The notes beneath the pieces are model-generated. The model did not search any database. It was not told the DNA's origin and saw nothing but the letters and a program-made list of their open reading frames with translations. From assembly GCF_001194135.2 (NCBI RefSeq), contig NC_068985.1:34706561-34764066 (forward strand): a DNA stretch of 57,506 nucleotides. Reading direction: 5' to 3'. The DNA comes from Octopus bimaculoides. Lineage: Eukaryota. This document shows, one piece after another, positions 5,884-55,935 of this stretch. The position numbers and the translations under genes were made by a program. Numbering within the stretch: position 1 is the stretch's first letter; the number at the start of each line of letters is the position of its first letter.

Positions 5884-5938
5884 ATGGAAGTCAGTCTGTT
5901 ATACTTGAAATTCTTGATAATTATACAATGTGTCTGTG
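5884..5938 (+). CDS. Exon 1 (coding): signal peptide MEVSLLYLKFLIIIQCVC
   Basis: Acceptor ttttctttgtAG at 5879-5880, ATG at 5884, 18-aa hydrophobic peptide, perfect G|GTAAGT donor at 5939 in phase 1, matching the first Ig exon (…CVC-VSLEVEV). Confidence 0.75.
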
Positions 5939-6100
5939 GTAAGTAACAAAGTGTTTCTGATAATAAACTCTATTTTTTTCAAACTATCCATTAGTAGACA
6001 GTAGAATTTAATCATAATTGCTGTTTAATCTTAAGGCCATTACTGATCAAGTAGAATTACATTTAACCTGTTAGCATTCAAATTAATCTGTCAAATGTAA

Positions 6101-7200
6101 TATTGGGTTGGCGAGAAGGTAATTTTGTTTTTCACAGATAGATAGAGTTACAATTTTTTGAATGACTTTTGTCAATGTTAACGATTTTTTTCCTTTTGAC
6201 ACTTGTTAGCTGTTACTTTTAGCTTACTTTAGAAGCAAATTGCACATAATTTTGTTTATAGCTATTAATTCGGTGTCACTTTTAGCATGAAATGCAAAAA
6301 CGAATATTTTCACCATATTTTGCCTTTTTATTTCTGTAAAGGCAAGAAAGCTGCTGAGGCTCACAAAGAGTTATGTGAAGTTTATAGTGTTGATTGCTTA
6401 ACAGAACATGCATGTCAGAAATGGTTTAAAAATTCTGTTCTGGAGACTTTTCCCTCAAAGATGACCAACGTTTTGGTTGACCTACTGAAGTTGATGATGA
6501 CTGAATCTGATTGTCATATAACTGTGTAAGAGATTGCAGGAAGGTTAAATGTATGATGCACAACAATTAAAAAATCACTTAAAATGTTTTGGACTCATTA
6601 AGAAGCTTGATATTTGGGTTCCGCATAAAACAGAACGAGATTCACTTAAAACAACGAATCAATGCTTGTGATATGCAACTCAAATGTAATCTGTTTTTGA
6701 AATGAATCATCACTGGTGATGAAAAGTGGATTGTCTACAATAACATCAATCAAAAACGATCATGGTCCAAGTGTAATGAACCAGCACAAATCACACTGGA
6801 AGCTGAAATGCATCAAAAAAGGTCATGTTGTCAATTTGGTGGGATTACAAAGATGATGTGTATTTTGAGCTGCTTCCAAGAAACCAAATAATCAATTCAG
6901 ATGTTTACTATCAACAACAAATGAAACTGAAGGAAACAATCAGAAAAATGACCAGAATTGGCAAATCATAAAGGAATCGTATTCCATCATGACAATGCTA
7001 GACAGCACACGTCTTTGCTAATTTTCAATAATGGTGATGACCTGAAATCGCACTTGCTTCAGTTTTTGGCTGATAAGGACCAGAAGTTCTATGAACATGG
7101 AATTATGAAGTTGCCAGAAAAATGGCAAAAGTTCATGGAACAAAATGGAAAATATATAATTGATTAAAAGTTCATTCTTTGTATGGGAAAAAATGACTTT
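6101..7200 (+). mobile_element. Degenerate mariner (Mos1/SETMAR-like) element
   Basis: Left TIR TATTGGGTTGGC; HTH region KGKKAAEAHKELCEVY; DIWVPH; TGDEKWIVYNN; FHHDNAR; C-terminus KLPEKWQKFMEQNGKYIID*; multiple frameshifts. Confidence 0.9.
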
Positions 7201-7464
7201 TATTTCACACTATAGTAGGTGTGACATGCCAGATATGATAAGTTTTAACATAAAACAAGTAGAAAATTTTGATCAAGATATAACTGGCTTAAATTCTAAA
7301 TGCTGCATATGAAGATATCTCATATTGTTTTCCCAGGTTCATTTTTCGTTTTTAAGATGATGAGCTGTGATTTGAGGTGAATTTGGTTGCTATGTCTAGC
7401 AGGTTGGTTTGAACCTAACTGCTACATCTATTATCATAGCTACTGTATGTTGGCACGGACATGG

Positions 7465-7640
7465 CTATGTGATTTAGAAGTAAAGTGCAGACATGGCTAA
7501 TAAGTTTGTGTTCCAACCATGTAGTTTTAGATTCAGTCTCACTGCACTGCATGGCACCTTTGGTAAATATCTTCTACTATAGCCCAAAACTGACCAAAGC
7601 CATGTGAGTGGATTTGACAGACGAAACTGAAAGAGGCCCG
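7465..7640 (+). mobile_element. Decayed SINE-like repeat; a related copy lies at ~7960-8110
   Basis: Both copies share catggct.., ttcagtctca.tgca.., tgtcttctacta, caaagcc.t.tga.tggatttg blocks. Confidence 0.45.
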
Positions 7641-7877
7641 TAACCACATGTGAATCGTTGGCGATTTTTTTTCCTCCATCTTCCTTTTCCATTGGACTTT
7701 CCTCTGTTTCTGAAGAAGAGCTTTGCTCGAAACATTAACCCATCGTTCTTTCCTTCCCTGAGCACCTGCTAATACTTTACATGTACCACGTCCTCGCGTT
7801 GCTGTTTTTTTGTGTTTGTTCCTAGTTTTTTTGGGGATATATATATATATANNNNNNNNNNNNNNNNNNNNNNNNNN

Positions 7878-7920
<43 letters not shown>

Positions 7921-8984
7921 CGTGTGTGTGTGCGTGTTTGTGTATGTGTGTGCACGCATGGCTAGGTGCAAGGATAGCTGTGTGATAAGGAGCTTGCTTC
8001 TCAACTGCATGGTTCTGTGTTTAGTCTCATTGCATGAAACCATAGGCAAGTGTCTTCTATTAGATCCATAGGACAAGCAAAGCCTTATGACTGGATTTGG
8101 TAGATGGAAACAATAAAGAAGCACATATGAACATTGTGTGTGTATATTTGTAAATATATATATATATTTATGATGGAAGCATAAAATGAGGGAGGGAAGT
8201 CATAACAGCAGTATGCATTGAGAAATGTGTAAATGAACTTGATAAATTACTGGGTGATGTCTTAGAGAAATCACATTATTGTTGGTGATATAGCATTCTA
8301 TTGCAGCTATGTGACATGTGTTTGTGATTAAGTGATATGTGATGACAATTCACTCCCAAACTGAAATAGGTTCCCAGCCTCTGTATCATGAATGGTCATG
8401 TGGGACCACTCCTAATGAAAGCCACTACATAAAAGGTATTAAGAAAAAATGTTATTTAGATATACTTGTATTTTAGTTGTTTACACTATTTTACACTTGT
8501 TTATGCATTCAAAGTTCAGAAATTTCCTTATTTAAATTATGAATCATATTCCTTTCGATAATATCAATATGATTACGAAACTTCTTTGTAGATGATATTT
8601 TCTGTTTGGGCGACACTAATTTTCAAATTACTGGAGTTCGTTGTTTTACTCATAGTGACGCATAACTGACTCTGTGTAAACATTGGAGTGGGTAAAAATA
8701 CACCTACACAATTTAAAATTTGGTTCTGTGCCTTGTTTGCTGTGAATGTGCCAGTGGAATCTTTAGGGTTGCAAAAGATCAAACTAAGACATACCTCTCA
8801 TTGCTCTATGCAAATAATGTCTGGATGTTCTGGTACCATGGGTTATTTTGATTGACAAAACTGAGATGTAAACAAGAGCTGCTTGGATTAGCTGTTTCAA
8901 ATCCTGCTCAAGACTGACACACTTCAATAACCACTAAATAATCACATACACTATATACTGACACACACTTTTCCCATTTTATTT

Positions 8985-9248
8985 TCGCTATTAACCATCC
9001 TCATGACGCTCTTTGTATCTACAATGGGATCATGAACTATATGATGAGAATCCCAAGTTACTTGTGGTCATTGAATTTTTAATAAAAATGCGAAGGTGGT
9101 TTATCAGTTCAAAAATCGATATCCACGAAATAATCATACTTTCTGATTTTTTTTAATGCTAAACACCTTCCTGATGACCATCTTTGTAATCCCGAAAAAT
9201 ATCATAACCTTTGGTCCAGCCATCTGACCGTAAAGAGAGAACAGACAA

Positions 9249-9305: not shown

Positions 9306-9692
9306 ATCTGCCCATCAACGATGGGAAATAAAGGGATAGTATTGCAAATTTAAACCCTCTAAATTCAAGAACTATACGGGCGGGAGGGGGCAGAGTTAAT
9401 CCTCATCGCCGGNNNNNNNNNNNNNNNNNNNNNNNNNNNNNNNNNNNNNNNNNNNNNNNNNNNNNNNNNNNNNNNNNNNNNNNNNNNNNNNNNNNNNNNN
9501 NNNNNNNNNNNNNNNNNNNNNNNNNNNNNNNNNNNNNNNNNNNNNNNNNNNNNNNNNNNNNNNNNNNNNNNNNNNNNNNNNNNNNNNNNNNNNNNNNNNN
9601 NNNNNNNNNNNNNNNNNNNNNNNNNNNNNNNNNNNNNNNNNNNNNNNNNNNNNNNNNNNNNNNNNNNNNNNNNNNNNNNNNNNNNNNNNNNN

Positions 9693-11095: not shown

Positions 11096-11947
11096 NNNNN
11101 NNNNNNNNNNNNNNNNNNNNNNNNNNNNNNNNNNNNNNNNNNNNNNNNNNNNNNNNNNNNNNNNNNNNNNNNNNNNNNNNNNNNNNNNNNNNNNNNNNNN
11201 NNNNNNNNNNNNNNNNNNNNNNNNNNNNNNNNNNNNNNNNNNNNNNNNNNNNNNNNNNNNNNNNNNNNNNNNNNNNNNNNNNNNNNNNNNNNNNNNNNNN
11301 NNNNNNNNNNNNNNNNNNNNNNNNNNNNNNNNNNNNNNNNNNNNNNNNNNNNNNNNNNNNNNNNNNNNNNNNNNNNNNNNNNNNNNNNNNNNNNNNNNNN
11401 NNNNNNNNNNNNNNNNNNNNNNNNNNNNNNNNNNNNNNNNNNNNNNNNNNNNNNNNNNNNNNNNNNNNNNNNNNNNNNNNNNNNNNNNNNNNNNNNNNNN
11501 NNNNNNNNNNNNNNNNNNNNNNNNNNNNNNNNNNNNNNNNNNNNNNNNNNNNNNNNNNNNNNNNNNNNNNNNNNNNNNNNNNNNNNNNNNNNNNNNNNNN
11601 NNNNNNNNNNNNNNNNNNNNNNNNNNNNNNNNNNNNNNNNNNNNNNNNNNNNNNNNNNNNNNNNNNNNNNNNNNNNNNNNNNNNNNNNNNNNNNNNNNNN
11701 NNNNNNNNNNNNNNNNNNNNNNNNNNNNNNNNNNNNNNNNNNNNNNNNNNNNNNNNNNNNNNNNNNNNNNNNNNNNNNNNNNNNNNNNNNNNNNNNNNNN
11801 NNNNNNNNNNNNNNNNNNNNNNNNNNNNNNNNNNNNNNNNNNNNNNNNNNNNNNNNNNNNNNNNNNNNNNNNNNNNNNNNNNNNNNNNNNNNNNNNNNNN
11901 NNNNNNNNNNNNNNNNNNNNNNNNNNNNNNNNNNNNNNNNNNNNNNN

Positions 11948-13260: not shown

Positions 13261-16211
13261 ATTTAGAGAAAAACCAACTATTAACAAATTCAACGATGAA
13301 AATGTCATTCAAAACATCTAGAAAAACAAATATACTACAAAAACCTATTCCAAAAATCAATAAATTACATAATCAATAAATAGCAAATAATATTAAAGGA
13401 CTACACGCGTTTCGTGGCTATATTTTAAAATAAATTTGATTCCATCTAAAAATATAGTCATTCTTCAGGTCTATAATAATCATAAGAATAATAAAAATAA
13501 AAATAAGAATAATACTAAAATCAATGTACGTATCTAAACTTATAATAAAATATCAAATAAATATAGAATAACACTTTTTCACAATAAATAATCGAAAAGT
13601 ATTTAACAACATTACTTAAAATGAAAACATAACTTATCTTATCAAAGAATTTCTGTTAAACGAAAATTTCAAACGTAAAACTAAGAACTTAGTGTTTATA
13701 AGAAGTATATCACATGAAAATATGGCGTAAATATAAAAATTATAGAATAAATAGATAGAATATGCATTTAATCTGTTAAAATGACAAAATGTATTTTAGC
13801 TGTGAGAATAAGAAAAAATTAACTGTTGTATATTATTTACTGGAAAATTATAAAGTCTAAATAATTTAAAATAAAGCCCTAATTTATGCAATGAATAAGG
13901 TAGGAATGACTTATGATGAAGTTAATGTAGTTAAAACGGCTAGAAAATCGTTGATTAAATATAATAATAAATTGTGGGCTAGGAAGGATACTAGGGACTA
14001 TTTTTATAAAGCTATGGGGCACCAGATTCTGCACAGGTAACTGATTTAGTAGGTATTTATTTATTATCGGAACTTCAATTAGAAAATTTAAAGGTAGAAG
14101 GTGGTTTATATTAGGATGACCTTTTATTAATAACTAACTATTGCACTAATAGAACACTAGAAGAAGAAGAAACATAAGAAGAAACTATATAGTCTTTTAA
14201 AAGAAATGGATTAAGTATTACTATATATAATGAGAACTATAATGTTAATTACTTAATAAAAACCTTAGATATATTAATGCTAACAGTAATCATCCACTCT
14301 CAATTGAGAAATCGTTGACAGATAATATAGGTAAAAGAATATCGTTGCTTTCTTCTAATCTTGAAATTTTTCAAAAAAAAAAAAAAAAATCCCACCTTAT
14401 TATAATGAAGCCCTGCGGGAGGCGGGATACAATATTAATTTCTTTAATAATTCTAAATATAATTATAATATAAAAGATTATAATATAAATGATTCCTATA
14501 TTTTTTATAATAATAAACCTAACATTAAGAATTATGATTAGTTTTATTTAAGTAATTATGGTACTAATAATAAGTATTATGATAATACAACAAAACATAG
14601 ATATAATAATAATAGACTAAAAAATAAGATTAAATTTAATTCATCTAATGATAATAATGAATTTAATAATATAAAAAATAAATATAATAATATAAATAAT
14701 AAGAACAAAATTTGGTTAATTATTCCTTATGGAGTTCAAGTTAAAACAAACATTATTAAAGAGATTTTAAATATAACTGAAGTATTCATTAGAGATAATA
14801 GAAAATATAATAACATTTTTTCTGGTAATAATTTTGGAGTTGGTTATTCTACTACTAATAATGTTGGTAATATTTTCTTCTTTTAATAAATTTAAGCTGA
14901 ATAAGTTTTACAAAAATGAATCTAATAATTATTCCAATAATAATAATAATAATAATAATATAGACCAGAATATAATTAATTGCACATGTAGAGATAAAAC
15001 TAAATGTAAATTTAATAATAAATGTAATTTGGAGGATGTAGTATATAAATGTGTAGTGACTTTGATTAATGATAATAATAGGAATAGGTATAATTTAAAT
15101 ACTATTTACATAGGGTCGACTTCTAATAAAATTAAATTACGGGTGTCTCAACACATGCATTCTTTTAAGAATAGAAGTTTAATTAATTCTACTGGCCTTA
15201 GTAAATATATATGGGAACTAAAATCTAAAGACATTAAGTACAATTTAAATTGGGAGATAGAATAGATAGTAATTTTTATTTATTATGTACTAATGAATTT
15301 AAGGAGATATTATTAACTAATAATAAAAAATTACTTAATTCCCTAGATGACCGTAAAATTAAATGTAGACATAAGTTAAATTATTTATATAATAAGTTTA
15401 GCTAATTTGTGTTTCTATGATACTAATTGTTGTAGATATAATTTGTAGTAGTTAAATGTGTATATTAGCGCGAGATTATATTGGGCATATTACATATTTA
15501 GAATAAGATTAAACTATGAAGTTTTTTTAAATAAATAAATAAAGAAAGAAAAATAGATGAAATTATAGAAATTTAGCTTAACTTATGTATGTTACATATT
15601 TTAGACTTAAATTATTTAGACTTTATATATAATTTTCCAGTAAATAATATACTGCAGTTAATTTTTTTTTATTCTCACATTTTGTCATTTTAACAGATTA
15701 AATGCATATTCTATCTATTTATTCTATAATTTTTATATTTACGCCATATTTTCACGTGATATATTTCTTATAAACACTAAGTTCTTAGTTTTACGTTTGA
15801 AATTTTAGTTTAACAGAAATTCTTCGATAAATAAGTTATGTTTTCAATTTAAGTAATGTTAAATACTTTTCGATTATTTATTGTGAAAAAGTGTTATTCT
15901 ATATTTATTTGATATTTTATTATAAGTTTAGATACGTACATTGATTTTAGTATTATTCTTATTTTTATTTTTATTATTCTTACGATTATTATAGACCTGA
16001 AGAATCACTATATTTTTAGATGGAATCAAATTTATTTTAAAATATAGCCGCGAAACACGTGTAGTCCTTTAATATCATTTGCTATTTATTGATTATGTAA
16101 TTCATTGATTTTTGGAATAGGTTTTTGTAGTATATTTGTTTTTCTAGATGTTTTGAATGACATTTTTCATCATTGAATTTGTTAATAGTTGATTTTTCTC
16201 TAAATTATATA
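13255..16211 (+). mobile_element. Penelope-like retroelement with inverted 5' pseudo-LTR
   Basis: Degenerate RT (~13980-14400: DLVGIY..GGLY*DD..NNHP..NIGKRISLLSS) and GIY-YIG endonuclease (DVVYKC..YIGSTSNKIKLRVSQH..STGLSKYIWELK, ~15030-15265); arms ~13255-13870 and ~15607-16211 are reverse complements. Confidence 0.88.
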
Positions 16212-16362: not shown

Positions 16363-16730
16363 TGGTTGTCTACTCCTTATGCAGTTTGACCACCTCCTGT
16401 TTCTACACCTTAGAATCATAATGGCATCTGATGTGGCTTTTTAAACCAAACAATGCTTTGAAAAGACACCCACATAGATTACATATCCTATTTGGATCAC
16501 CTACAGCTGCAGTTAAGTTCTGATCTTTGTGAATCTTAAAATGTCTTTTGAGACCTCCATTAGATTTGCAGGCCTTCTGGCATACATTGCATTGAAAGGT
16601 GTGCGCATACATATAGGCAGAATAGTTAGTGAAAGTTTGTTTTCCATGGCTTCGCAAATGAGATTTGAGCCCAGCAAAAGAAAGGCATTGTCTGTCGCAA
16701 ATGTGCATACAAAAAGGTATATATGTATGT
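16361..16730 (-). pseudogene. 3' end of a LINE (RTE-like) carrying three C2H2 zinc fingers
   Basis: HICDRQCLSFAGLKSHLRSH, CNVCQKACKSNGGLKRHFKIH, CNLCGCLFKALFGLKSHIRCH; first Cys lost by an apparent 1-nt deletion; stop at 16403, short 3' UTR, then a (TA)n/(TAA)n tail. Confidence 0.6.
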
Positions 16731-17757: not shown

Positions 17758-18407
17758 TAAAATGAAAATGGAAGGACAATACCCTAAGGAATGGTTAGAG
17801 GAAATTTAAGGTAAAGGAATTTAGGTCAAGATATTGGAGAATTATATCTATTCCTCAGTGTATCTAGAATAATACAACGAAACACTAAAGTACTAAATTT
17901 AAAACCATAGGGAACATTAATAGTTAAATTAGAACAAGACAAACATTTATAGTTAAAATAAGATATACATAAATTTTCTCTTGCTTGATTTACCCCTAAC
18001 CTGCTGTCTATTACTACTTTATCTACCTTCCTCTAAATTGAAATTACTACTATCTTACCCCTCCAATTAGATTATATAGAAATTAAATTCTTGTTTTGAT
18101 TCACTAGACTATTGAATGGCAGCCCAGTCAAGATGGTAGTTTCTTCTCCTACTCTTGTTTTTGCACACATCTACAAAATGACTTTCTAAAATGTAATTCC
18201 TTTATGCAGCTGAGGAGTACATTTTCATTGCACATTTTATGTAGTGTTCTCACTACATGAATAAATGAAGTTTGTACGAAACGTACGTACTGCTATAACC
18301 TATTGAATTTTTGTTGCTTTTNNNNNNNNNNNNNNNNNNNNNNNNNNNNNNNNNNNNNNNNNNNNNNNNNATATATGTATGTATGCTTTATATTTTCTTT
18401 CCTTCAG

Positions 18408-18692
18408 TTTCTCTTGAAGTTGAAGTTATTGATGGTGGTTTAAAATTTGCGAAGAAAAATCAACCAACAACACTTGAATGTTTTCTTGCAATGCAAAACT
18501 TTGAATACTGGCAAATTGAATTTCAAAAAATTAGAGATCCTTGGCCACCAATTAAAAGTGAAGTTTTTGAAGCAAATGTCATTTCTGGGACAGTCAACAT
18601 CTTGAACATCACTCTTTTTTCAAATAATGATGTAGCATTATTTTGTAAGACCACTGGAAAGATGATAAAATTTCAAATAAAACCAATATATA
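18408..18692 (+). CDS. Ig-like domain 1 exon (VSLEVEV..TTLEC..YWQ..LFC..KPIY)
   Basis: ttttctttccttcAG acceptor, A|GTAAGT donor, 285 nt, phase 1-1, Cys-Trp-Cys spacing of an Ig fold. Confidence 0.8.
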
Positions 18693-20939: not shown

Positions 20940-21800
20940 TCCCTCATTTAACAGCATGTTGTTTCTGTCCACCCAATGATTTACGACATGCACCTCAGAC
21001 TGGAGTTTTGTCTGACCTTCTTCACCACTAATAAGTTTTTGAAGCTGTGAATATTTTCATTTTGCTGTGCTTGATGACAAATTGAGATTTTGTTTATATA
21101 GACTACGAAGAGAAGTGGGCCTGAAATGGTCCCTTGAGAAATACCACTGGTGACTTTTGCTAGGCTTGAGTGGATTCCATCAATCACAACTTGTTGGGTT
21201 CTGTTCACCAAGAAATACTTGATCCAGTGAAGCAGTATACCATAGATTCAAGTATTGGACAGTTTTAGCAAAAAAAATATTGTTATTGACTCTGTCAAAG
21301 GCTTTGCTGATGTCAAGATATATAACATCAGTGTTCAATCCCTTTCCAAATACATTAAGAATGACATCAAGGTGATGTAAAAGCTGTGTTAGGCAGTCTC
21401 TGCTGCAACAAAAGCCATGCTGGAATAAGAATCATTTCAATATATACTCTGAGTTAAAAGATTTTCTCCAGAGGTTGGTTAGAGTGGATGCAAGTTGGTG
21501 ACAGTATTCCTTCAGGACACTAGCAGAGAATTTATCAGGGGCTATTGCAGAATAATGCTTGGTTTTATGATGCCTGAGGCAGTAAAAGTTATGTCAGAAA
21601 TAACATGAAGGATGAGTTCATTGAAATATCTTGCATCAATATTACTGAGATCACTGAAGAAAGACCAATATTGCTTCTGCAGGACTCCTGGCATTTCTTT
21701 AGCATCATGGTGGAGATTGCTGTTGTCATCTATCAGTGGACCAATGGGTGAGACAGCAGTTCTATGCTTGCTGACAAATAAATTAAAAAAAACTTTCAGG
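20940..21800 (-). pseudogene. CR1/Jockey-type LINE reverse transcriptase fragment
   Basis: DVIYLDISKAFDRV..GILLHWIKYFLVNRTQQVVIDGIHSSLAKVTSGISQGTISGPLLFVVYIN with frameshifts. Confidence 0.8.
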
Positions 21801-23935: not shown

Positions 23936-24247
23936 ATGACATTGGGAATCTTTACCCAAGTTCTGAAACACCAATTGCCATAAAGGATAAAAAATTTACA
24001 TTGAAATGTAATTCAGCTGATGAAAGTACTTCGACAATTTGGTACACTGAAAATGGAACAGTTATTGCTAAATACACTGGAGCAGTCAACCAAAATTATT
24101 CTAAATATTTTGGAAGCCGTCAAGAAGCTGGTTGCCAAAATAAAAGTTGCATATTGAGTATAACCAATGTCAGTTTAGCTGAAGACAACATGAGTATTAT
24201 TTGCAGTTCTTCTATCCATACAAGCATGTTCAGTATTACAGTATTTG
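23936..24247 (+). CDS. Ig-like domain 2 exon, V/I-set-like (FTLKC..IWY..GCQNKSCILSITNV..ED..IIC)
   Basis: ttgtcttttAG acceptor, G|GTAAGT donor, 312 nt, phase 1-1, canonical Cys-Trp-Cys plus L-x-I-x-N-V-x-x-x-D strand-E pattern. Confidence 0.88.
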
Positions 24248-41227: not shown

Positions 41228-41476
41228 ATGTACCTGATATTACTGCATCAGAGAATATGACATTAATTGAGAATCAAGCATCCATTCTAAACTGTTCTGC
41301 AGAAGGAAACCCTATCCCAGAAGTGAGGCTGGAATATGAAAATCAAAGTTTTCCTTCAAACTCCCCCTTAACTTTTGATCGTAGAAATAGCAGTGATGTT
41401 TTCTGTGTTGCCGTTGCAAAGAGTACAAAACATGGAAATTTGACATCTAGAAAGAAAATTAATATCCTATTGAAAT
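41228..41476 (+). CDS. Ig-like domain 6 exon (LNCSAEGNPIP..VFC)
   Basis: tttttatAG acceptor, T|GTATGT donor, 249 nt, phase 1-1, C-x-A-x-G-N-P-x-P motif. Confidence 0.9.
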
Positions 41477-41499
41477 GTATGTTAAGTATAAATATTTTT

Positions 41500-41501
41500 T
41501 C

Positions 41502-41532
<31 letters not shown>

Positions 41533-41541
41533 TGCTGCTGA

Positions 41542-41591
<50 letters not shown>

Positions 41592-41592
41592 T
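41500..41592. repeat. Compound (CTG)n(CTA)n microsatellite ~25 nt after the domain-6 exon donor
   Basis: Directly visible. Confidence 0.9.
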
Positions 41593-43059
41593 CTCCACCA
41601 TCTTCACCACTACCATTACCATCCCCATCACCACTAGCTCCTATATATAACCTGTTGCATTCCATAACTACAGTTTGTCACTTTTTGAATCACATTGTTA
41701 AACACAAAAGTAAAGTCTTGTAACCAAATAGATTATTGAAGCACTAGAAAATACTTATTAGTTACAGTGTCTTTCCTGTTGCTTGGTTTCATGGTACCTA
41801 TTTAGAGCTTGATGGACTAATAACTGACACGGCATAACACCAGTAGAATACGTGCTGTCTCTTCTTCTTGCCTATTCTATTATTATTACTATAACACTGC
41901 TCCTAACTTTTTGCAACCTCCATCCAAGATTATATAATGCATTTGTCTCTCCCACTTTTCTGATTGCTCAAGCCCTGCACTAACCACTATATACAATCAA
42001 ACCATCTCAGGGCTGAAGTCTGTGATATTCCCTCCCCACTTATGCTTTTTTTGCAGATATTGGTAATCAAAACTGGACACAAACTGTATTAGTCTTACCA
42101 GATTTAGAAAATTTTTGGAAAAAAAAAATGGCTGCAGCTACTTTTAGTTGACTGAGCTCTAAGTAATCATATAATGCTTCCATCTAACATGCTGTTCCTG
42201 CTATATCCACTGTATTTACTCTGAGAATAATATTCATGACACCCAGACTTTGCAATCTTGCTGTTGTTCAGATTCAGAACTTCCTAAGTTTAGGAGAATG
42301 ATCTTCTGTGAATGAACAAATGAATTAATAAATGGTTTGGGATCGTTGATCCTTGCTTTTACTGATAGAATCATTGTGAACAACCTTCATATCAATTTAT
42401 CCAGTTCTGATGGTTTCAGTATTTGTGGTTGTTCTGATCTTTAAAACCACCTTGCTTCTATTAGTATATTGTGTAAACATCTTCAACTGCCCTATTTCTG
42501 CATATTGACATATCTTTTGATATGTTTTAAATGGGAAAATTTAATTTCTCCTATAACTATTGATAGAGAAATAGTTGTCAAATTAATGTTTCACAAAGAC
42601 ATCTTTAATTGAAATATCTCTCCTTAGAACAGAAACTTGAGAAATTAGATGTCTGAACTCATAATCTGTAAAAACAATTACTCATTGAATTGAAAGAGTG
42701 GAAAATAATTTTACTGTTAGAAATGGAACACTAACCTTTTAGCATTCAGAGTACTCTGTCAAATGTAATGCTTAATTATTCACATTCTTTTGAATTAATC
42801 ATGTATTATCTTTTAGTTTCAAGATTTCAATGATGTGACTTTATTTATGGAGAGACATTGTTGGGTTGGTGTGAGAGGCTTGATGTGGTCAGTTTGAACA
42901 TAAAACATATAAAGCATTTGGGCCGGATATGACTAGTTTAGATGTTAAAGGGTTAAATCTCTAAAGAATGTGGCAATAAAATGTGTGGTTGTGCTTAGGC
43001 TACATTGTTGGCAACATCATTATTCTATTTTCAGAGTAATATAATTATTTACAATACAC

Positions 43060-44640
43060 AAGCATGGTAGATAAAGCCATGAAGGATATGAAGACCAGGA
43101 AAGTCCCTGGCCCGTCAGGATTCGCCACTGATATGCTTAAAATATCAGGTGGTGTGGATTATGGTTTAGTCACCTGTATAGTTAACCAGTGTAGTAGCAC
43201 CATAGTCAACTGCAACAAAGTAAAGGTGACACCTGAGATGGAAATAATTACAGCGGTATCAAATTGTTGGATTAATTGAGGAAAGTTATGCAAAGGGTCT
43301 TAGCCTAACTAATTAGAGCGAGAGATAGTCTAGATGAGATGCAGTTTGTTTTGTGCGAGGCAGAAGCACCACTGATGCTATAATTCTGGTAAGGCAACTG
43401 CAGGAGAAATACCTAACCAAAGATAAGCCTCTGTACTTGGCTTTTGTTGACATGGAGAAAGCCTTTGACAGGGTCATCTGATTCCTTATCTGGTGATCAA
43501 TATGAAAACTAGGAGTAGATGAGTGGTTGGTGAGAACTGCACAAGCCATGTACAGGGATGCTGTCAGTAAGGTGAGGGTTGGTAATGAGTATAATGCAGA
43601 ATTCAGTGATGTGTATAGGCAAAGACAGTTGTGTAAAGAAATGCTGATTGCTAACAGTGAAGGAAGCCTGTGGAAGAGGTAAACCCAGTAAGATATGGGT
43701 GGTGAAGCATGATCTTTGAATGTTGGGCCTAATGGATATGATAACAAGTGATCGAAACAAATGACAATATGCTGTGCTTGAGAAGACTCATCACACAAAG
43801 TGAAATTGCAATGTCAATGGCACCTGGGAAATCGTAATTGTAGCCCTTTGCTGGTAACATGATCTTCGAATGTTGAGCCTCATGGAGATGATAAGAAGTG
43901 ACTGAGACCTTTGGTGATATGATGTGCTTGGAAAGTCTCATCAAGCCAAGTGAAATCTTAGTCGTAGCCATTGCTGATGCCATGTAAATGGCACCTGTGC
44001 TGGTGGCATGTAAAAAGCACTCATTACACTCTTGGAGTGGTTGGTATTAAGAAGAGCATCCAGCTATAGAAACCATGCCAAATCAGATTGGAGCTTGATG
44101 CAGCCCTCTAGCTTACTAATTCCAGTCAAACAGTCTAACCCATGCCAGCATAGAAAGAAGACGTTAGACGATGATGATGATGATGAAAAGATTGGTAAAT
44201 GAGCAGAGAAAATATAGGATTAAGAGGAGTCTTTAATGTTGTCTAGCCTAGGATATAAAAACTTCTCTAGTGTTAGCGCCACATTAAAATGCACCCACTG
44301 ATCAGTGATTACAGATGAAGGAGTAGATGAATGGCTTGTGAAAGCCATGCAAGACATATACAGGAGTGCTGTCAACATGATGAGAATTAGCAATGAGTAT
44401 AGTGATGAAGTTAGAGTGTAGGTAGGGTACCATCAATGCTTAATTCCTTTCTACTTATCAAAGACATCCAGAAGTGCTTAAGACTGAGTGTCCATGGGAA
44501 TTCTTTTATGATGATATCCCTTTTCCTATAGCTTTCCATATTGCTTTTCTTAAGCTAGTAGGAGTAGAAAAAGTTACAGGTGTGAAAGCAAATCTTGAAA
44601 TCAAAGGGCCTCAACGTTAACTTGGCAACATTAAAGATGT
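43060..44640 (+). mobile_element. RTE-clade LINE fragments (RT pieces, 3' UTR with (GAT)n tail at ~44000-44185)
   Basis: KAMKDMKTRKVPGPSG; STTDAIILVRQLQEKYL..LYLAFVDMEKAFDRV; LGVDEWLVR..AMY; second RT piece at ~44320-44640. Confidence 0.8.
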
Positions 44641-45082: not shown

Positions 45083-45337
45083 ATCCTCCTCAAGTAAACA
45101 TTCATATTTCAAATGAAACAAATAATACTTTACTAATTAATTGCACTGCATTTGATGGAAATCCAGCAAACTATGAATACAAACTGAAGCAAAAGTGGGG
45201 AAATGCCACTAAGAATACTTATAATATAAGTGTATTATCTATAAACAATTCTACTTTCAATAATACTGGTACATGGGAGTGTCATGTAAGCAATGAAGAT
45301 TTTCATGTGAGTAAATCATCAGACTACAAAATCACAG
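45083..45337 (+). CDS. Ig-like domain 7 exon (INCTAFDGNP..GTWECHVSN), ends at a GC donor; absent from the supplied ORF track
   Basis: atttcttttaAG acceptor; open frame YPPQVNIHISNETNNTLLINCTAFDGNPANYEYKLKQKWGNATKNTYNISVLSINNSTFNNTGTWECHVSNEDFHVSKSSDYKIT; AG|GCAAGT at 45338 gives phase 1 and 255 nt, the same length as the domain 4 and 5 exons. Confidence 0.87.
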
Positions 45338-47579
45338 GCAAGTATTTTACAAAGTCACAATTTAATTTTAAAAACATATTTACAATCAGCTATTTATTTG
45401 ATTTTATCCTATTAGAAGATTGTTGGACTTTGTTTTTTTTATGTATATCAATAAAACTGACAATTTGTAACTGTAAAGTTTTAGGAATGGTTTGATATGT
45501 AAATAGTTAAGAATTGTAGAATTCAATTCATCCGATTTTCTCCAAAAGAAATGAAGCTGTTTTCAAGAAAATTTTAAACATTCATTTTATACAGTGAAAT
45601 AGTTTCCCTATTGAATTTTCTTACCGTTTAGTCTGTTCCATTTCAACTGTCTATTGTATGCCAGTATGAAGACTATACAGCAAATTAACTTATCAGGCAA
45701 GAACATTAAATATTTCTTGTTACAGTAATTCAAATTATAAGGATATACAATTTCGGCCAATAAATAATTTATTTTCTAAGTGTTACAACAGATATTTCCA
45801 AAAACTTTCCAAAAACTTTTAATAGCATGAGGTTTTCATTTAAATTCTATACTATATTATATTTGTTATCTTTAGAAAGAAAAGAAATGTCTATATCGTG
45901 TTTAGGTGTGTATGAAGGACACTTTGTAACATAAAAGTAATGGTTTATAGAATGTCTACCACTTCAAGTGTCTTGAGATTTAAGGTAATGTAAGAACTGA
46001 TGAAACAAGATTATCAGTATAATCTTAGAAATATTGACTGTTTCTGAGCTGCATTGGAGAGATTGTCTTTAATGGAGATGACACAAATTTTGGATTAAGT
46101 GATATTTGAGAAAGAAAATTTCAAAACTTATTAAGAATTAGTCAATTTGCAAGAATAACTTCAGGGTGATATCTAGGACAATATCAGATAATGAAAATTG
46201 CTTCCTAAATTATCATAAATCTAAAAATCTCTGAAGTGAGATCTAATACAGGTTATATAAATCCAGCTCCTTTCAAAATATTTCTTTTTATGTCACACAT
46301 TGGCCTCTTGTCTTTGATCAAATATATGAAAATAATCAGTGAGTGTTATCTATTTTTAAATAACACTTGAAACTATTAACTTGACTTGCTAGTTTTAAGT
46401 GATCAAGGCTTTTTTGTACTTAAAAGCCTTAATGGTCACATCTTAAGTAATGAGTAGAATTGTAAAAAAGTAACTGACTGAGTGTTTGTTATGTATATGA
46501 AGTTAAACTGGATATGGATATAGGTAGCTAATATGACAGATTTGACTGCCATATGCATTGGGTTAGTTAAAAAGTGGTGAATAAGACTCTTTCACAAAGT
46601 TGCCAGATGTCTGTGGGGATGAGATAGCTGGAAGGAAAGGGCTGTGATGTCAACAGACAAGGGTGTTGACTGGAACAGAAAGAGTGAGAGAAGAAGTGAG
46701 AAAGAAGGACCAGGGTCATCCTCTTTTGCCTTGGGTGCTCACGATGAATGGATGTGAGGTGAGTGAGTTGATAGGGATGGGTACTAGCAGTTGCTAGCGT
46801 TAGGTGTGCAGGCTGGGCATGAGCTCTGGATTGAGTATAGCTGGGTGGCAAAATGACAATAAGGTAGGTGAATTATTTATTTCCCTGCATTACAATTCCC
46901 TTATACAACAATGTCTAATAAGTAAGAATTTGTGTAATTGGAATTAAGAGCAATAAAAACTTATATTGCATAAAGGTGTATTTTACTCTATCATTAATCT
47001 TCATTTTGAAATCTTTGTATGTGTGAATGAATTTCTTTCAGATGATTATTATTGTTTGTATTGTAGTAGAACAGACTGCTGTAAAGCATTCACTGGCAGT
47101 TAATCTATATGGTTTAGTGATGTGTAAAATTGAGAAGGTCTTACACAACAATCAAAATTGTGTTTGACATTTGGCAGGTTATTCAGATATTTTACATACT
47201 TACTACAACAGATTGTTAACATAAAATTTAGAGAAATGCAGGTAGTTGGATGACTTGATCAGGTGGAATGTGATGAGACAAGAGTGTTAGAGGATCTTCT
47301 GGGACCATACTCTGTAAAATATGCCATGGTTGTTGTGTAGTGGTTGTAATTGAATGGGATGATACACTAGAGTTCGTTTGATAACTAGGGATTCTAATTT
47401 GGAGGTGAAATGGTACAGATGCTTAGAATTGAGTCAATCTGAAAGTAAATTTCTGTCATCAAATTGTATAATTTACATTTTATTCATTCCACTTATTTTT
47501 TGAAAACTTAGGTTTCTTCTATTTCAAATTTACATTATATATTATTTTCTTTCAATATTTCATTATTTTTTTCCACCAG

Positions 47580-47888
47580 TGAAACCTATTTTCAGTTCAA
47601 TATCAAACAATTCCAAAAAGAGAAATGTGGCAATTGGAGAATCTGTAATTTTCAAACAGTGTTTTTATTCCCATCCAAAATCTTATGTAAAATGGCAAAT
47701 AAATGACGAATTAATTGACTTCAACAAATATTTAACAACTGATTTTGTATCAAGTGATTTTCCTTTCAAAGGAATCTGTACTAGTTTAAAAATAGAAGAC
47801 ATCAAAGATAATGATATTAGTACTTATACCTTAACATTGGAAAACTATGTAGGAAAAGAAGTGATTACTTTTGCCTTGAAGCATCAAG
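47580..47888 (+). CDS. Ig-like domain 8 exon, membrane-proximal, non-canonical cysteines (KQCFYSHP..KW..GICTSLKI..YTLTLEN)
   Basis: tttttttccaccAG acceptor, G|GTAAGT donor, 309 nt, phase 1-1; D-x-S-T-Y-T-L-x-x-x-N strand-F motif with Leu in place of Cys. Confidence 0.9.
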
Positions 47889-48530: not shown

Positions 48531-48827
48531 CCACTTCTATGAAGTGGGGAGAGGGGGACTAAACTAACTTCATAGATATGGGGAAGTTTACCTGTTGTTT
48601 CTAGAATGTTGGGTTTTCTGTTGGTTTTCTGGTATTTTTTAAGTCTACTGTTTCAGTAGAATTCTATGCATGCGGGAAACATCAGCCAAAAGTGAAACAT
48701 TGGGAGATTTTAGCTTTTTGAAAGCTGGTAGGTGATGGATGAGCAAGGTGGAGGAAGGGGCATTGAGTGTTTCTTTAAGAAAAATTAAACTATAAAAATG
48801 TATATATACATATATATATAAGGCTCT

Positions 48828-49012
48828 GAATTTACCTTCAAACGAGGAACAAAGTTTAAAATTAAAACCAATTTCTCTTGTTCCTCTGGTAACCTCATTT
48901 ATGTCCTTACTTGCGCAGGTTGCCAAAACTTCTGTATCGGACAGACGAGCCTCCCATTACGTAGAAGAGTAGCTGTCCATAAGGAACAAATAAACCTCCC
49001 TCAATACCGCCA
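48828..49012 (+). pseudogene. GIY-YIG endonuclease fragment of a different Penelope-like lineage (CxxC type)
   Basis: FSCSSGNLIYVLTCAGCQNFCIGQTSLPLRRRVAVHKEQINLPQYR, cut by an N gap. Confidence 0.75.
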
Positions 49013-49588
49013 NNNNNNNNNNNNNNNNNNNNNNNNNNNNNNNNNNNNNNNNNNNNNNNNNNNNNNNNNNNNNNNNNNNNNNNNNNNNNNNNNNNNNNNN
49101 NNNNNNNNNNNNNNNNNNNNNNNNNNNNNNNNNNNNNNNNNNNNNNNNNNNNNNNNNNNNNNNNNNNNNNNNNNNNNNNNNNNNNNNNNNNNNNNNNNNN
49201 NNNNNNNNNNNNNNNNNNNNNNNNNNNNNNNNNNNNNNNNNNNNNNNNNNNNNNNNNNNNNNNNNNNNNNNNNNNNNNNNNNNNNNNNNNNNNNNNNNNN
49301 NNNNNNNNNNNNNNNNNNNNNNNNNNNNNNNNNNNNNNNNNNNNNNNNNNNNNNNNNNNNNNNNNNNNNNNNNNNNNNNNNNNNNNNNNNNNNNNNNNNN
49401 NNNNNNNNNNNNNNNNNNNNNNNNNNNNNNNNNNNNNNNNNNNNNNNNNNNNNNNNNNNNNNNNNNNNNNNNNNNNNNNNNNNNNNNNNNNNNNNNNNNN
49501 NNNNNNNNNNNNNNNNNNNNNNNNNNNNNNNNNNNNNNNNNNNNNNNNNNNNNNNNNNNNNNNNNNNNNNNNNNNNNNNNNNNNNNNN

Positions 49589-50101: not shown

Positions 50102-50185
50102 AAATTACGGAAGACTCTTTGGGAACAATTATTGGTTGTGTTATAGGAATTGTATTATTAATAATTTTGGTACTTCTTATAAGAG
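50102..50185 (+). CDS. Transmembrane exon (E)ITEDSLGTIIGCVIGIVLLIILVLLIR
   Basis: tatcttttcAG acceptor, AG|GTTGGT donor, 84 nt, phase 1-1, about 21 consecutive hydrophobic residues ended by Arg. Confidence 0.85.
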
Positions 50186-50269: not shown

Positions 50270-50772
50270 ATATAATTTAGAGAAGAACCACTTAAATAAT
50301 TCAATAATAAAGAATGTAATTCATACCCTCTAGAAAATAAATATATCATAAAAACCTTATTCTAAAAATCAATAAAGTACATCACTGTCTCAGGAAGGAT
50401 GTAGTTTATAAGGGCATTGTGACCACCAATAATAATATCTTTCACTACACTGGAGCCACTGTTTCCCAATTTAAATGGAGATATTATAATCATGTCTACT
50501 CCTTCAAGATATATAATAAGCATAAGTGTACATCGCTGGTTGAGCTGGTTTGGGACTTAAAATTGAAGAGCACCTCATATACGATTTCTTGGTCTGTTGT
50601 GATGTCTGCTCTCCCCTACACAGGAGGAGGGGGAAGAGTGCAATCTTTGCACAGTTGAGGCTTTTGAGATATTAAAAAATCAGGGTAACATTATTAACAA
50701 AAGAAACGAAGTGCTTTATGCATAAAAATCACAGGACCGTTGCAAAACTCAGTTAGTTTAGTCCCCCTCTCC
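50270..50772 (+). mobile_element. Penelope-like fragment: inverted pseudo-LTR-like piece plus GIY-YIG 3' end
   Basis: 50270-50390 resembles 13255-13380; DVVYKGIVTT..YTGATVSQFKWRYYNHVYSF..TSLVELVWDLK..YTISW at 50398-50658. Confidence 0.78.
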
Positions 50773-52199: not shown

Positions 52200-54130
52200 A
52201 TTTAGAAAAATACATATTTTCCCGCTTGAACACACAATTTTTTTCTCATTTCTTAAGTTAAGTTGGGTATTCTTAGATCTAACAATAAGGAAAGCTTCAG
52301 TGATACAAAGATAACATATTTTCTTGTTGACTTTTTAAGCTGGTGTGGAAGCAATGATATCCCATTCAGTTTCAAAGTCAGTACTATTATCTTGTACTTC
52401 TCATATAAATTTACTTAATCCAGTGGAATTGGTTTTTCTGCTTATTTTTTAAAAGACTGGAGATGATTTGCCACCCGAGTCTCAACCTTATTTTCAGTCG
52501 AGCCAATAAAAATATAATTCTTGCCCTGAGCTATAACAGTGCATTGATAAACTACATATTTTCTTTTACATGAATTCTTAAATTTACTATTATTTTTAAC
52601 TCTACAATCACAATTTTCATAAATATTGTTATGTGTGGATCTATCAGAAGAATTCGTATTAGTAGTGTTAGTATGGGTTGTTATAGTTCCATTATTGAGA
52701 TTTATATGAGCATAATTATTAGGGTTAGTGAAATTTGGGAGATATATTTTAAGTTCAGGGGAGTTAGAATTATTATGGACATTTCTATTGGTGTAGAATT
52801 GCTTAATTTCCTGTTGTTAGTGGATGATATAATTGTAAATAAGTTAGGAGTGAGGCGAAAACCAATCTTGACAGTTTTGTGGTTTATGATTTTATTTATC
52901 ATGAATTTATTATTTGTATGATTTGTATTTATTATGAATGTTAAAGTATTTATGAATGGCTTTAAATATAGTTTTAACTATGTTATTTTTAATTTGCATT
53001 GAATATGGAATAATAAATCATATTTTATTAGATTTATCAGGGTGATTATTATTTATGCGTATATTAAAATCTATTTTAGGTTTTTTTAGAGTTAATGAAG
53101 TGGGTGTGTGGTTTAATATTATTACTATTCGAGGCATTATATGAATTAACAGTGGTGCTGGTATCATAAGTGATTAATTGATTATTGATAACACTATGTT
53201 TATTAATTATGTTATTTATCGTTGTAGAACTCATTACAATTGTAAATTGGTTATTTATTATTTATTTTGTGTATATGAGATAACTTAGTAATGGTTTTTC
53301 TATTATTATGTTTGATACTATTAGTTTGATTTAAAATAATCTTAGGTTTGTTATCGTTATCAATTCCTTATTTATGTAGTTGGGTTACTAGTTATATGCT
53401 TATTTTTAATTATATTACTATTTATGGTGGGATTATAAAATTTACCAGTTTTATTTATTTATTTGCTTTTTTGCTTGTAATTAATTATGCTATATTTATT
53501 AATGTTGCTAGGTTGATGGTATTCTATTTTATCTCTATATCCAGTGTTTGCTAGAGCTGTATTGTAGTGGTTCACATATCTATTAAATATTTCTTCATTA
53601 GAAGATAAATAGGTTAGTCTTTTACCAATGTTGGAGGCTAATGCATTCTTAATTGTTCTTGGATGGTTGCTTTGGCAGTTAATATAGCTTAAATTAGAAT
53701 TATGTCTTCTGAAAGGTTCATGCAATCTGGATGATAAATTGAAGTTAACATCTAAAAAGTTAATTGAATTATTATCCCTCTCAATAGATATAAAAAGACC
53801 ATGCCTTTTAAAAAACTTATAAAATCTTTTCTTAAATAGTTCTAATTTTCTATTGGATGCATTTTTTATGATAAAGAATGCATCGTCTCTATACAGTCCT
53901 CCCCTGATTTCAGGAAATTCATCATGAAGATAGATTCCAACAAGGTCAGACACTTGGGTGGAGTCTGCGATGCCCATTGTGATGTCAAAACGATTGGGAG
54001 TGTCCTTTCTAGTCTGAGACCAAATTTATCTAGATTTATAAATATAACTATATTCATACCAGCAAATAACTTGCACAATTCTCTCTCCTCTTTCATATTT
54101 TTTTTTAATATAAAAACGAAATGAAACACT
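52200..54130 (-). mobile_element. Degenerate Penelope-like retroelement (RT plus GIY-YIG)
   Basis: RT: MG..SDLVGIYL..GGLYRDD..INFLDVNF..YINCQSNHP..NIGKRL (53459-53977); endonuclease VVYQCTV..IGSTENK..RVANH..STGLSK..EW..CYLCITEA at ~52250-52570. Confidence 0.88.
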
Positions 54131-54949
54131 GACATTTATTATTCAGGCATAAAAATTTTAAGAAACCATTATGCTAATTTTACTTCTCCAGAAATGCTAT
54201 AGGGTATAAATAAATATTTAAAATGCCACTAACTAATCGAATTTAACAGAGCGAATGCCACGCATCCTTTTCCAAGTAAGTTTTATCTTAATATTACTAT
54301 GCGCACTCTTCTACTATCTCTCTCCCTCTCTTGTTCTTCATCCTTTCTGTTTTTCTCTCCCACTCTTTCCTTATTCTTCTTCTCTCCCTTTCACCATTTC
54401 CCCTCTCTCTCTCTCACTCCTCCTCTTCCTCCTTGACCATCTCGTTGCTGACACGTAACGAAAGGGGTTCTTTCTTTCTGCCCACTGGTATTCCTAAAGA
54501 ACATACGTGAATTTTTCTGTCTCTTCTACTTAGCGTTCATAATAATTTTTCTATCAGCTTGGCCCAACAGACCTCACCGTTTGTTTTAACTGTCGTATTT
54601 TTACTTGTTTTTACTGTTTTCATTGTTTTTACTGTCTTGTTCTCACTGTCCTGTTCTTGTTAACACTTTCACCCTCTGCAAAAAATTCAAAATTCTATTT
54701 AATCTGCTTTGCGGGAAGGACTGTTCCAACAAAGTTGCGTAATATCCTTGCCTTCGAAACGCAGAGTAGATGGACAGGAACAACTGACGAAGGGATATAC
54801 TCTTTATGTTGCATGTCTCGTTTCTCTGTTTGTTTTTTTTTTGTTGTTCGAAAAAAGTTCATTTTCTGTTTTCGTTTTTATGTTTTCGTTTTTCGTTTCT
54901 CATTGTGTTCACGTGTTTTAGATGTCCTGTACCCATATAGGTATGTATG

Positions 54950-55242
54950 TATACATATAGATGTAGGTATGTACATATATGTATGGATATNNNNNNNNNN
55001 NNNNNNNNNNNNNNNNNNNNNNNNNNNNNNNNNNNNNNNNNNNNNNNNNNNNNNNNNNNNNNNNNNNNNNNNNNNNNNNNNNNNNNNNNNTTAAGTTGAG
55101 GCACCAGAATTTAGTATGCTATTATCCATACAATTTCAAAATAAGGTGATTATAAGGTGATTGTTGCTTATTTTGATTATATGTATATATACATATGTAT
55201 ACATACATATATTCATATAGTATATATATGTGTATATATATG

Positions 55243-55287
<45 letters not shown>

Positions 55288-55314
55288 NNNNNNNNNNCTA
55301 TATCTATATCTATC

Positions 55315-55345
<31 letters not shown>

Positions 55346-55550
55346 ATATACATATGTATATTGTGAATATATATATATATACATGTATATATACATATGT
55401 ATATTGCGAATATATATATATGTATATATGTATGTATATCTATATCTATCTATCTATCTATCTATATATATATATACATGTATATTTATCTGCATCTATA
55501 TATTTATTTACATCTATATTCATGTGTATGTGTGTGTGTGTGTGTGTGTG
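54950..55550. repeat. (TA)n/(TATC)n/(TG)n microsatellite field with gaps
   Basis: Directly visible; source of Tyr/Ile-rich spurious ORFs. Confidence 0.9.
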
Positions 55551-55916
55551 TACTCCTACCATTGCTTGACGACTGATGTTGCTGGGTTTACATCTCCTTA
55601 ACTTAGCCGTTTGGGAAAACGCATGAATAACATAAGTACTAGGCTTACAAAAAATAAATCCTGAGGTCAATTTGTCCTTCTGAAGGCAGTGCTCCAGCAT
55701 GACCCCATTCACATTACTGAAACAAGTAAAACAACAAAGAACTATAACGTTTTAATCTCGAGATGAAACTTGAGATGAAATCGCTTCTGATAAAATTACT
55801 GCTGTAACTAATGGTAGTTATGTTTGATATAAAAAAATTGTTACACTTACTACTCTTACAAGACATGTTTAATATTGAATAACATTTCTATACACATCAC
55901 GTTTTTCTCTTTTCAG

Positions 55917-55935
55917 CTGTGATGTACAATAAAGT
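55917..55935 (+). CDS. Candidate 19-nt cytoplasmic micro-exon, (A)VMYNKV
   Basis: Strong acceptor gtttttctcttttcAG and perfect GTAAGT donor 19 nt apart; open in phase 1. No downstream partner exon identified. Confidence 0.4.

Follow-up and report, generated by a model that had tools for sequence, protein, structure and literature searches.

A candidate recognition receptor of Octopus bimaculoides from an apparently coleoid-specific, tandemly duplicated family of eight-immunoglobulin-domain membrane proteins

We analysed a window of 57,506 nt from the genome of Octopus bimaculoides (NC_068985.1, 34,706,561-34,764,066, forward strand; positions below are numbered within this window), which contains exons 2-12 of LOC106879981, a gene for a predicted single-pass membrane protein with eight immunoglobulin (Ig) domains. 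Splicing of the window sequence joined eleven exons on the + strand, all with intact splice signals, into one open frame whose product was 100% identical to residues 5-806 of XP_052824251.1, the 975-aa isoform X2 of this "uncharacterized" locus. The exons predicted from the sequence alone in an earlier note on this DNA are therefore real. LOC106879981 is represented by RefSeq XP_052824250-254, for which the public record gives no function, and its RefSeq gene range, 258 kb long, encloses a further gene, of 100 aa. Literature searches by locus name and on the octopus Ig superfamily (IgSF), haemocytes and the immunoreceptor tyrosine-based inhibitory motif (ITIM) returned no mention of these loci or of the family. 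The gene is already annotated, as uncharacterised; the family itself is new, undescribed and of a known kind.

The order of the exons is signal peptide, eight one-domain Ig exons (D1 to D8), transmembrane exon and a 19-nt juxtamembrane exon, with phase 1 at each boundary from the donor of the signal-peptide exon through the acceptor of the 19-nt exon. The signal-peptide exon (5881-5938, +) has its acceptor at 5881, an in-frame ATG at 5884 and a phase 1 donor, G|GTAAGT; residues 5-23 of XP_052824251.1 matched it with 100% identity by tblastn against the window, and the N-terminal 19 aa of its product have a hydropathy of ~2.0. The Ig exons, all on the + strand and all of phase 1-1, lie at 18408-18692 (D1, membrane-distal), 23936-24247 (D2, Ig_3 E=0.002), 28258-28578 (D3, C2-set_2 type, PF08205 E=3.7e-6), 31974-32228 (D4, which starts the block common to all five RefSeq isoforms), 36626-36880 (D5, Ig_3 E=5.7e-7), 41228-41476 (D6), 45083-45337 (D7, with a GC donor) and 47580-47888 (D8, I-set E=3.6e-7). 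They are followed by the transmembrane exon (50102-50185, +, phase 1-1), which carries TIIGCVIGIVLLIILVLLI and has a weak donor, G|GTTGGT, that is conserved in paralogues, and by the juxtamembrane exon (55917-55935, +), which encodes (A)VMYNK(V), runs from phase 1 to phase 2 and is the final coding exon within the window, the tail exons being downstream of it. The intron after D7 is of the GC-AG type (CAG|GCAAGT, 45338-45343), and the GC donor is kept in three paralogous loci (L002, L003 and L004); this conserved donor was preferred to a GT donor at 45310, the other candidate for D7. Nor is 55917-55939 a terminal exon ending in a stop codon, since the RefSeq protein puts the donor at 55935. 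A microsatellite of the (TGC/TGT/CTG)n type (41477-41640) begins directly after the D6 donor, so that the open frame of D6 continues into poly-Cys/poly-Leu and could mislead exon calling based on open reading frames (ORFs).

The earlier note had described ten exons, one Ig domain per exon and all of phase 1-1, encoding a protein of about 793 aa. Its exons and their splicing were borne out, as was the single-domain, phase 1-1 layout for all of the Ig exons and the transmembrane exon, and its end coordinate of 55935 is explained by the donor of the last exon, AAAGT|GTAAGT; the count was one short, there being eleven coding exons in the window. The length was also too small, as the RefSeq proteins have 966-980 aa: a first coding exon (MCHK) lies upstream of the window, within which it was searched for and not found, and residues 807-975 (169 aa) are also encoded beyond it, the tail of XP_052824251.1, which continues with ...AVMYNKVTSSAKG, giving no match in the window. 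The expectation that automated annotation would have fragmented the gene did not hold, for XP_052824251.1 contains every exon and an earlier model, of 798 aa, had already extended from signal peptide to transmembrane segment. What had been missed were the 169-aa tail with its tyrosine motifs and the use, in four of the five RefSeq isoforms, of another set of exons for signal peptide to D3.

The assembly of the window contains several gaps, and four of them lie in the 12.5-kb intron between signal peptide and D1 (7852-7877, 9413-9692, 11096-11947 and 18322-18370). The last of these ends 37 nt 5' of the D1 exon, leaving the polypyrimidine tract intact. Of the other two, one is in the D5-D6 intron (37682-37809) and one in the intron between D8 and the transmembrane exon (49013-49588). 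All gaps are intronic and none abuts an exon, so that frame continuity across them is not at issue. That an additional Ig exon is hidden in a gap is unlikely, judging from independent assemblies: the proteins of O. sinensis (P0003) and Argonauta hians (P0050) are colinear with ours and have no additional domain at the gap junctions, the latter aligning in one stretch (19-914 against 15-894). The order of exons at the paralogous loci also matches that of the window gene.

From its sequence, the product is predicted to be a type I membrane glycoprotein, in which a signal peptide is followed by eight Ig-like domains, a single transmembrane helix and a cytoplasmic tail of 177 aa. Pfam analysis of the whole protein found the Ig_3, I-set, Ig_2, ig and C2-set_2 families, with E values down to 6e-24, and only Ig families, there being no FN3 domain at E<=1. 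When searched domain by domain, D3, D5, D7 and D8 were clear and D2, D4 and D6 weak, and D1 alone gave no Pfam match and no V-set match. An AlphaFold model of D1-D2 (21-sequence alignment; mean predicted local distance difference test score, pLDDT, 87; predicted template modelling score, pTM, 0.79) consists of two beta-sandwiches, and the protein belongs to the immunoglobulin superfamily. The full-length model (13-sequence alignment) had a pLDDT of 38, and the fold search used the D1-D2 model instead; its neighbours were generic tandem Ig structures (titin, single-chain variable fragment (scFv), pIgR and LAR) at 9-15% identity, with no specific relative among them. Sequence searches of the PDB likewise gave weak generic Ig matches only (E 1e-3 to 1e-6). 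A cysteine pair was recorded for each domain, the F-strand position of D8 being occupied by Leu; D1 has the pair Cys24-Cys79, with Trp34, and D2, which is V/I-like, has an additional pair, Cys66-Cys71. D4 and D6 have no core Trp. The earlier note had remarked on these same departures in D4, D6 and D8, and the residue check agrees. Conservation of the D6 G-strand motif, AKSTKHGNLTSRKKINILLKYPP, extends to a bivalve protein. The ectodomain contains 31 N-glycosylation sequons, one in D1 and eight in D7, and the transmembrane segment (helix 776-801) has a 19-residue hydropathy of 3.37.

The 14 proteins returned by a word-indexed search came exclusively from O. bimaculoides, O. sinensis and O. vulgaris. 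An exhaustive search with a profile of 13 family sequences against 1.84 billion representative proteins returned 308 proteins at E<=1e-3, of which 22 had E<=1e-30; of the strong matches (E<1e-30) with a known or looked-up source, nearly all were cephalopod, and one was a 5157-aa multi-Ig protein of a sponge. The strong relatives are from O. sinensis, O. vulgaris and Argonauta hians, a full-length protein of the last scoring 786 bits, and weaker ones occur in Acanthosepion pharaonis. One cuttlefish protein covers D4 to the tail (246 bits), and a second, P0061, which has an FN3 domain, is a separate and much weaker match (197 bits). Lower matches comprised giant multi-Ig proteins and multi-Ig proteins of bivalves, a hemichordate and a horseshoe crab. 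The automatic names of the best non-cephalopod proteins were inconsistent (nephrin-, syg-2-, hemicentin-, peroxidasin- and CD22-like), at about 25% identity, those named "nephrin-like" or "syg-2-like" scoring 84-94 bits as against 1984 bits within the family. A freshwater-mussel protein is colinear from late D4 to D8 (25% identity, E=1e-21) and shares the distinctive D6 G-strand motif, which indicates that the membrane-proximal module has remote molluscan relatives. The profile search of the 1.84 billion representatives found no conserved bilaterian orthologue, and as the other matches were generic multi-Ig proteins at about 25% identity, the gene is not nephrin, Dscam, hemicentin or CD22. On this taxonomic distribution the family appears to be specific to coleoid cephalopods, where it is tandemly duplicated. 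Domains resembling D1 and D2 (motifs GNL.P, W[YF]..G and a C...C pair before strand E) were also seen in a set of small proteins of ~300-400 aa, most with a transmembrane segment, namely P0110 (O. bimaculoides LOC106876419, on the same chromosome), P0070 (O. vulgaris), P0122 and P0140. It follows that the module formed by D1 and D2 seems to be a more widespread Ig type specific to octopods.

In O. bimaculoides at least five paralogues are arranged in tandem within 0.84 Mb of CM046605.1 (34.30-35.13 Mb). They include LOC106869178 (34.297-34.381 Mb), the truncated unit LOC128247863 (34.430-34.475 Mb), LOC106874069 (34.857-34.946 Mb), which is without D5-D6, and LOC106874055 (35.031-35.126 Mb), the model of which starts at D4 and lacks signal peptide to D3. 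LOC106879981 has XP numbers consecutive with those of its neighbours and fits the 0.38-Mb interval between LOC128247863 and LOC106874069. The layout of one domain per exon is common to the paralogues, and introns are still ~75-86% identical between units.

The five RefSeq isoforms of LOC106879981 differ at their 5' ends. Only X2 uses the signal peptide, D1, D2 and D3 of the window; X1, X3, X4 and X5 join a different signal peptide-D1-D2-D3 cassette to the window's D4-to-tail exons (31974 onward). This other cassette was formerly a separate gene, LOC106874545, once with its own D4, D7 and D8. A similar mosaic is seen in O. sinensis, where the LOC115212116 protein resembles O. bimaculoides LOC106869178 in D1-D3 (78-88%) and the window's unit in D4 and D6-D8 (86-93%); the range of LOC115212116 is 780 kb and has a 464-aa Ig family gene nested inside (GCA_006345805.1), and LOC118763632 is nested within the range of a 1173-aa gene model of the same species. 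As the Ig exons are all of phase 1-1, any cassette joined to D4 would stay in frame. The evidence for these joins consists of computational gene models (RefSeq), and they may represent either an organisation of variable cassettes on a constant block or read-through and chimeric models within a tandem array. It is conceivable, but in our judgement rather doubtful, that the locus is a variable-constant Ig array in which several signal peptide-D1-D2-D3 cassettes spread over hundreds of kb are spliced onto shared D4-D8, transmembrane and tail exons, each cassette having a diversifying D1 and the tail being assembled combinatorially from single-motif mini-exons. Were this so, an invertebrate would possess a germline-encoded, splicing-based repertoire of recognition receptors, in a layout analogous to that of the clustered protocadherins but built of Ig cassettes, and alternative splicing of 5' cassettes, if real, would add a new case of receptors diversified by splicing.

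The outermost domain is the most diverged part of the protein. Identity to relatives is 35-56% for D1 and 64-93% for D4-D8 where these were detected, the exception being D7 of the Obi_106874545 model at 61%. In pairwise comparisons with three paralogous loci the ratio of nonsynonymous to synonymous substitution (dN/dS) of D1 was 1.46, 0.85 and 1.30, against 0.46-0.59 for pooled D2-D8 and 0.37-0.81 for the individual domains D2-D8, and the bootstrap probability that the ratio of D1 did not exceed that of the rest was 0.003, 0.175 and 0.000, respectively. The D1 exon was also less conserved than its own flanking introns in all three paralogue comparisons (73.7 vs 81.3%, Fisher p=0.014; 73.6 vs 86.4%, p=5.5e-5; 66.7 vs 74.6%, p=0.02), the intron identities being from locally alignable stretches only and so biased upward; the figures themselves are thus less dependable than the difference between D1 and the other exons. 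With one exception, the exons of D2-D8 exceeded their introns in conservation. Strands A', B, C, C', F and G of D1 vary greatly, and D (FEANV) and E (ILNITL) little, a pattern that fits a variable GFCC' binding face. A tandem cluster in which the membrane-distal domain is the most variable, as here, is in keeping with the immune-type IgSF clusters of the leukocyte receptor complex (LRC) or Alr kind.

The cytoplasmic tail contains 11 tyrosines in acidic contexts, including three YVNV and YLPM/YLFL units within the repeats EDSEPRYL(P/F)(M/L)KHP and D(D/G)VYVNVS(R/K)KP. Paralogues and the O. sinensis relative have up to nine YxN and ten YxxM motifs, and the cuttlefish relative also has YxN repeats (NEPQYINV). 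The SH2 domain of Grb2/Drk recognises the consensus pYxN (YVNV type), and that of PI3K p85 the consensus pYxxM. Motifs of both types recur in the tail and are conserved throughout the family, the cuttlefish relative included, and on this basis they are predicted docking sites. In three paralogue loci the tail is encoded by an array of AG/GT-flanked exons of 42 and 60 nt with one tyrosine each, and the RefSeq isoforms differ by the inclusion of exactly these units. In O. vulgaris CAJ1099246.1 (P0088, "adhesion GPCR G6-like", where GPCR is G-protein-coupled receptor), juxtamembrane and tail cassettes (NYATIPDEAL, EEQYAEASGPSYLELKPA and YVNVSRKPD) follow a GPCR-like part; this is probably a fused gene model.

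Because it belongs to a tandem, cephalopod-only family whose outermost domain evolves unusually fast, the gene is a good candidate for a recognition receptor, and our preferred interpretation, to which we give a probability of roughly 0.55, is that LOC106879981 encodes a diversifying recognition receptor that signals via phosphotyrosine docking sites. D1, the tip of the eight-domain Ig rod, would bind a ligand that may be a surface molecule of another cell or a microbial molecule, and would have been driven to diversify between paralogues in strands A', B, C, C', F and G, with D and E remaining constant. Engagement of ligand, on a cell that may be immune or neural, would lead to phosphorylation of the tail tyrosines in their acidic contexts, upon which D-x-x-Y-V-N-V units, fitting the Grb2/Drk SH2 consensus, and E-P-R/K-Y-L-x-M units, fitting that of PI3K p85, may recruit their respective SH2 proteins. 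With units of both types the tail would offer several docking sites and serve as a scaffold that feeds into the Ras/MAPK and PI3K pathways, and as each motif is on its own symmetric mini-exon of 42 or 60 nt, alternative splicing would set the number of docking sites. The earlier note had inclined to a similar view, which as a whole is partly supported. No recognisable orthologue emerged from the profile search; the strong divergence it had noted is localised to D1 (dN/dS 0.85-1.46, the exon more diverged than its flanking introns); the lineage-specific family it supposed exists as a tandem cluster with strong relatives only in coleoid cephalopods; and its exclusion of nephrin, hemicentin and Dscam agrees with the lack of an FN3 domain and with the ~25% identity of non-cephalopod multi-Ig matches. 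To our knowledge, almost nothing is known of cephalopod receptors for immune or self/non-self recognition, and the lineage-specific expansions known in cephalopods are those of protocadherins and zinc-finger genes. A coleoid-restricted eight-Ig family, with a signature of diversifying selection in its tip domain and a modular tail of SH2-docking motifs, as found here computationally, is a concrete and testable candidate recognition system.

Several observations weigh against a signalling recognition receptor. The tail lies outside the window and is known only from computational RefSeq models, and its short tyrosine motifs can be chance occurrences or endocytosis signals (YxxPhi). The dN/dS of D1 is not significantly above 1 (P 0.09-0.7), the intron identities are biased upward, and no orthologue of the window D1 was seen in other species, as would likewise be the case for a decaying exon. 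As four of the five RefSeq isoforms skip the window's signal peptide to D3, its D1 may be a minor or unused cassette. Such points lead to the suggestion that either this cassette or the unit as a whole is a duplicate under relaxed constraint or in decay, that the divergence of D1 reflects lost constraint and that X2 is a prediction artefact in a tandem array, an explanation that would also accommodate a D1 dN/dS close to 1, a dN/dS raised across the whole gene (0.4-0.8), the want of any D1 orthologue of more than 56% identity and the truncation of neighbouring units (LOC128247863, and LOC106874055 without signal peptide to D3). We nevertheless find it quite improbable: all eleven exons are open with intact splice sites, D1 keeps its cysteine pair, its Trp and its conserved FEANV and ILNITL strands, the greater conservation of the D2-D8 exons than of their introns indicates purifying selection, and neutrality alone would not yield a D1 exon with 26% mismatches beside flanking introns with 14% (p=5.5e-5).

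A function in neuronal or epithelial adhesion and wiring, by homophilic or heterophilic trans-binding as for nephrin, SYG-2 and IgLON proteins, is a possibility that we take seriously while considering it an improbable one. It would be consistent with the multi-Ig single-pass architecture, with the automatic nephrin-like and syg-2-like names of the closest non-cephalopod proteins and with neuronal growth regulator 1 as the best profile match in the PDB; alternative 5' Ig cassettes on constant exons would then resemble the protocadherin arrangement, diversity serving cell identity in the octopus's large nervous system and not immunity. The two signal peptide-D1-D3 cassettes on the same D4-to-tail exons in the RefSeq models, and the 780-kb O. 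sinensis models with nested family genes, would suit such an arrangement in an animal already known for its expanded clustered protocadherins (PMC10084454). The lack of FN3 domains, the inconsistency of automatic names attached to ~25% similarity, and tail motifs of adaptor-docking and not of PDZ or catenin types all speak against it. More improbable than either of these alternatives is an inhibitory co-receptor of the CD22/Siglec/PECAM type, acting via ITIMs on SHP-type phosphatases. The long Ig ectodomain, a single ITIM-like match (VMYNKV) in the juxtamembrane exon (55917-55935), the presence of CD22 d6-d7 among the weak PDB matches (E=1e-3) and the TIYADI or TIYADL ends of family members in Argonauta and O. 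vulgaris could all be cited for it, but VMYNKV is five residues from the membrane and is replaced by RAVKCKKD or RGVKRNKE in paralogues, the repeated and conserved units of the tail are YxN and YxxM and not [IVLS]xYxx[ILV], and D1 is without a V-set match.

The introns of the window contain other elements. An ORF at 6287-6529 (+) in the intron between signal peptide and D1 encodes the helix-turn-helix of a Mos1/mariner transposase (PF17906, E=8e-14) and is a transposon remnant, and a 101-aa ORF in the same intron (16403-16708, -) encodes C2H2 zinc fingers (E ~1e-5 to 1e-7) and may derive either from the expanded C2H2 family of the octopus, as a fragment, or from a transposable element. Reverse-transcriptase-like fragments are found at 43338-43478 (+; RVT_1 E=0.002, below threshold) and 20981-21211 (-). 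An interspersed repeat of ~300 bp, the copies of which are 84-94% identical, occurs at 22483-22785 and 57198-57478 of the window and three times in a paralogous locus, L001 (~29910-30008, 41460-41756 and 48587-48888). Longer intronic ORFs at 14834-15265 (+), 50341-50655 (+), 53459-53977 (-) and 4842-5444 (-) had no Pfam match and are presumably unclassified repeat-derived sequence, and Rfam and tRNA scans of the window found nothing.

Among known systems, nephrin, SYG-2 and Sns (the IRM family) are also single-pass proteins with about eight Ig domains and tail tyrosine motifs that dock SH2 adaptors, and bivalve proteins automatically named nephrin-like or syg-2-like are among the best non-cephalopod matches. 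These proteins differ from the octopus gene in having an FN3 domain before the transmembrane segment, where the octopus D8 (I-set) abuts the transmembrane exon, and in tail motifs of YDxV in place of YxN/YxxM; the similarity is partial, at about 25%, and no nephrin or SYG-2 chain was returned by the PDB searches. Dscam has ten Ig and six FN3 domains with arrays of mutually exclusive Ig exons, in contrast to eight Ig domains and no FN3 in the octopus, where each Ig exon occurs once in the window by tblastn. The absence of FN3 excludes the nephrin and Dscam architectures. Hemicentin is a giant secreted protein with VWA, more than 40 Ig, EGF and fibulin domains, unlike the 975-aa octopus protein with its transmembrane helix and only Ig domains. 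CD22, PECAM-1 and CEACAM1 share with it a rod of C2/I-type Ig domains, one transmembrane segment and a multi-tyrosine tail; short exons that undergo alternative splicing encode the tail of PECAM-1, and a YxN site of the Grb2 type is present in CD22. By sequence these proteins are not orthologous to the octopus protein, which has neither a conserved ITIM nor a V-set sialic-acid-binding domain: in place of the V-set D1 and tail ITIMs of CD22 and the Siglecs, we found a D1 with no Pfam match and a lone ITIM-like site that is juxtamembrane and unconserved.

The RefSeq models, which splice alternative 5' units onto shared 3' exons across hundreds of kb with other units nested in an intron, recall the clustered protocadherins and UGT1A. 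The octopus variable unit differs in comprising four exons and not one and is known from predicted models, and as most octopus units own D4-D8, read-through chimeras remain an alternative to a variable-constant locus. The closest published analogue in kind appears to be the Alr complex of Hydractinia, a lineage-specific IgSF cluster with atypical Ig domains, alternative splicing and tail tyrosine motifs (PMC9546547). It belongs to another phylum and shows no homology, its proteins have one to three Ig-like domains with ITIMs and immunoreceptor tyrosine-based activation motifs (ITAMs) as against eight Ig domains with YxN/YxxM, and octopuses are not colonial. What the two have in common is a tandem, lineage-restricted set of single-pass IgSF proteins, with Ig domains that lack some of the diagnostic motifs yet keep the Ig fold.

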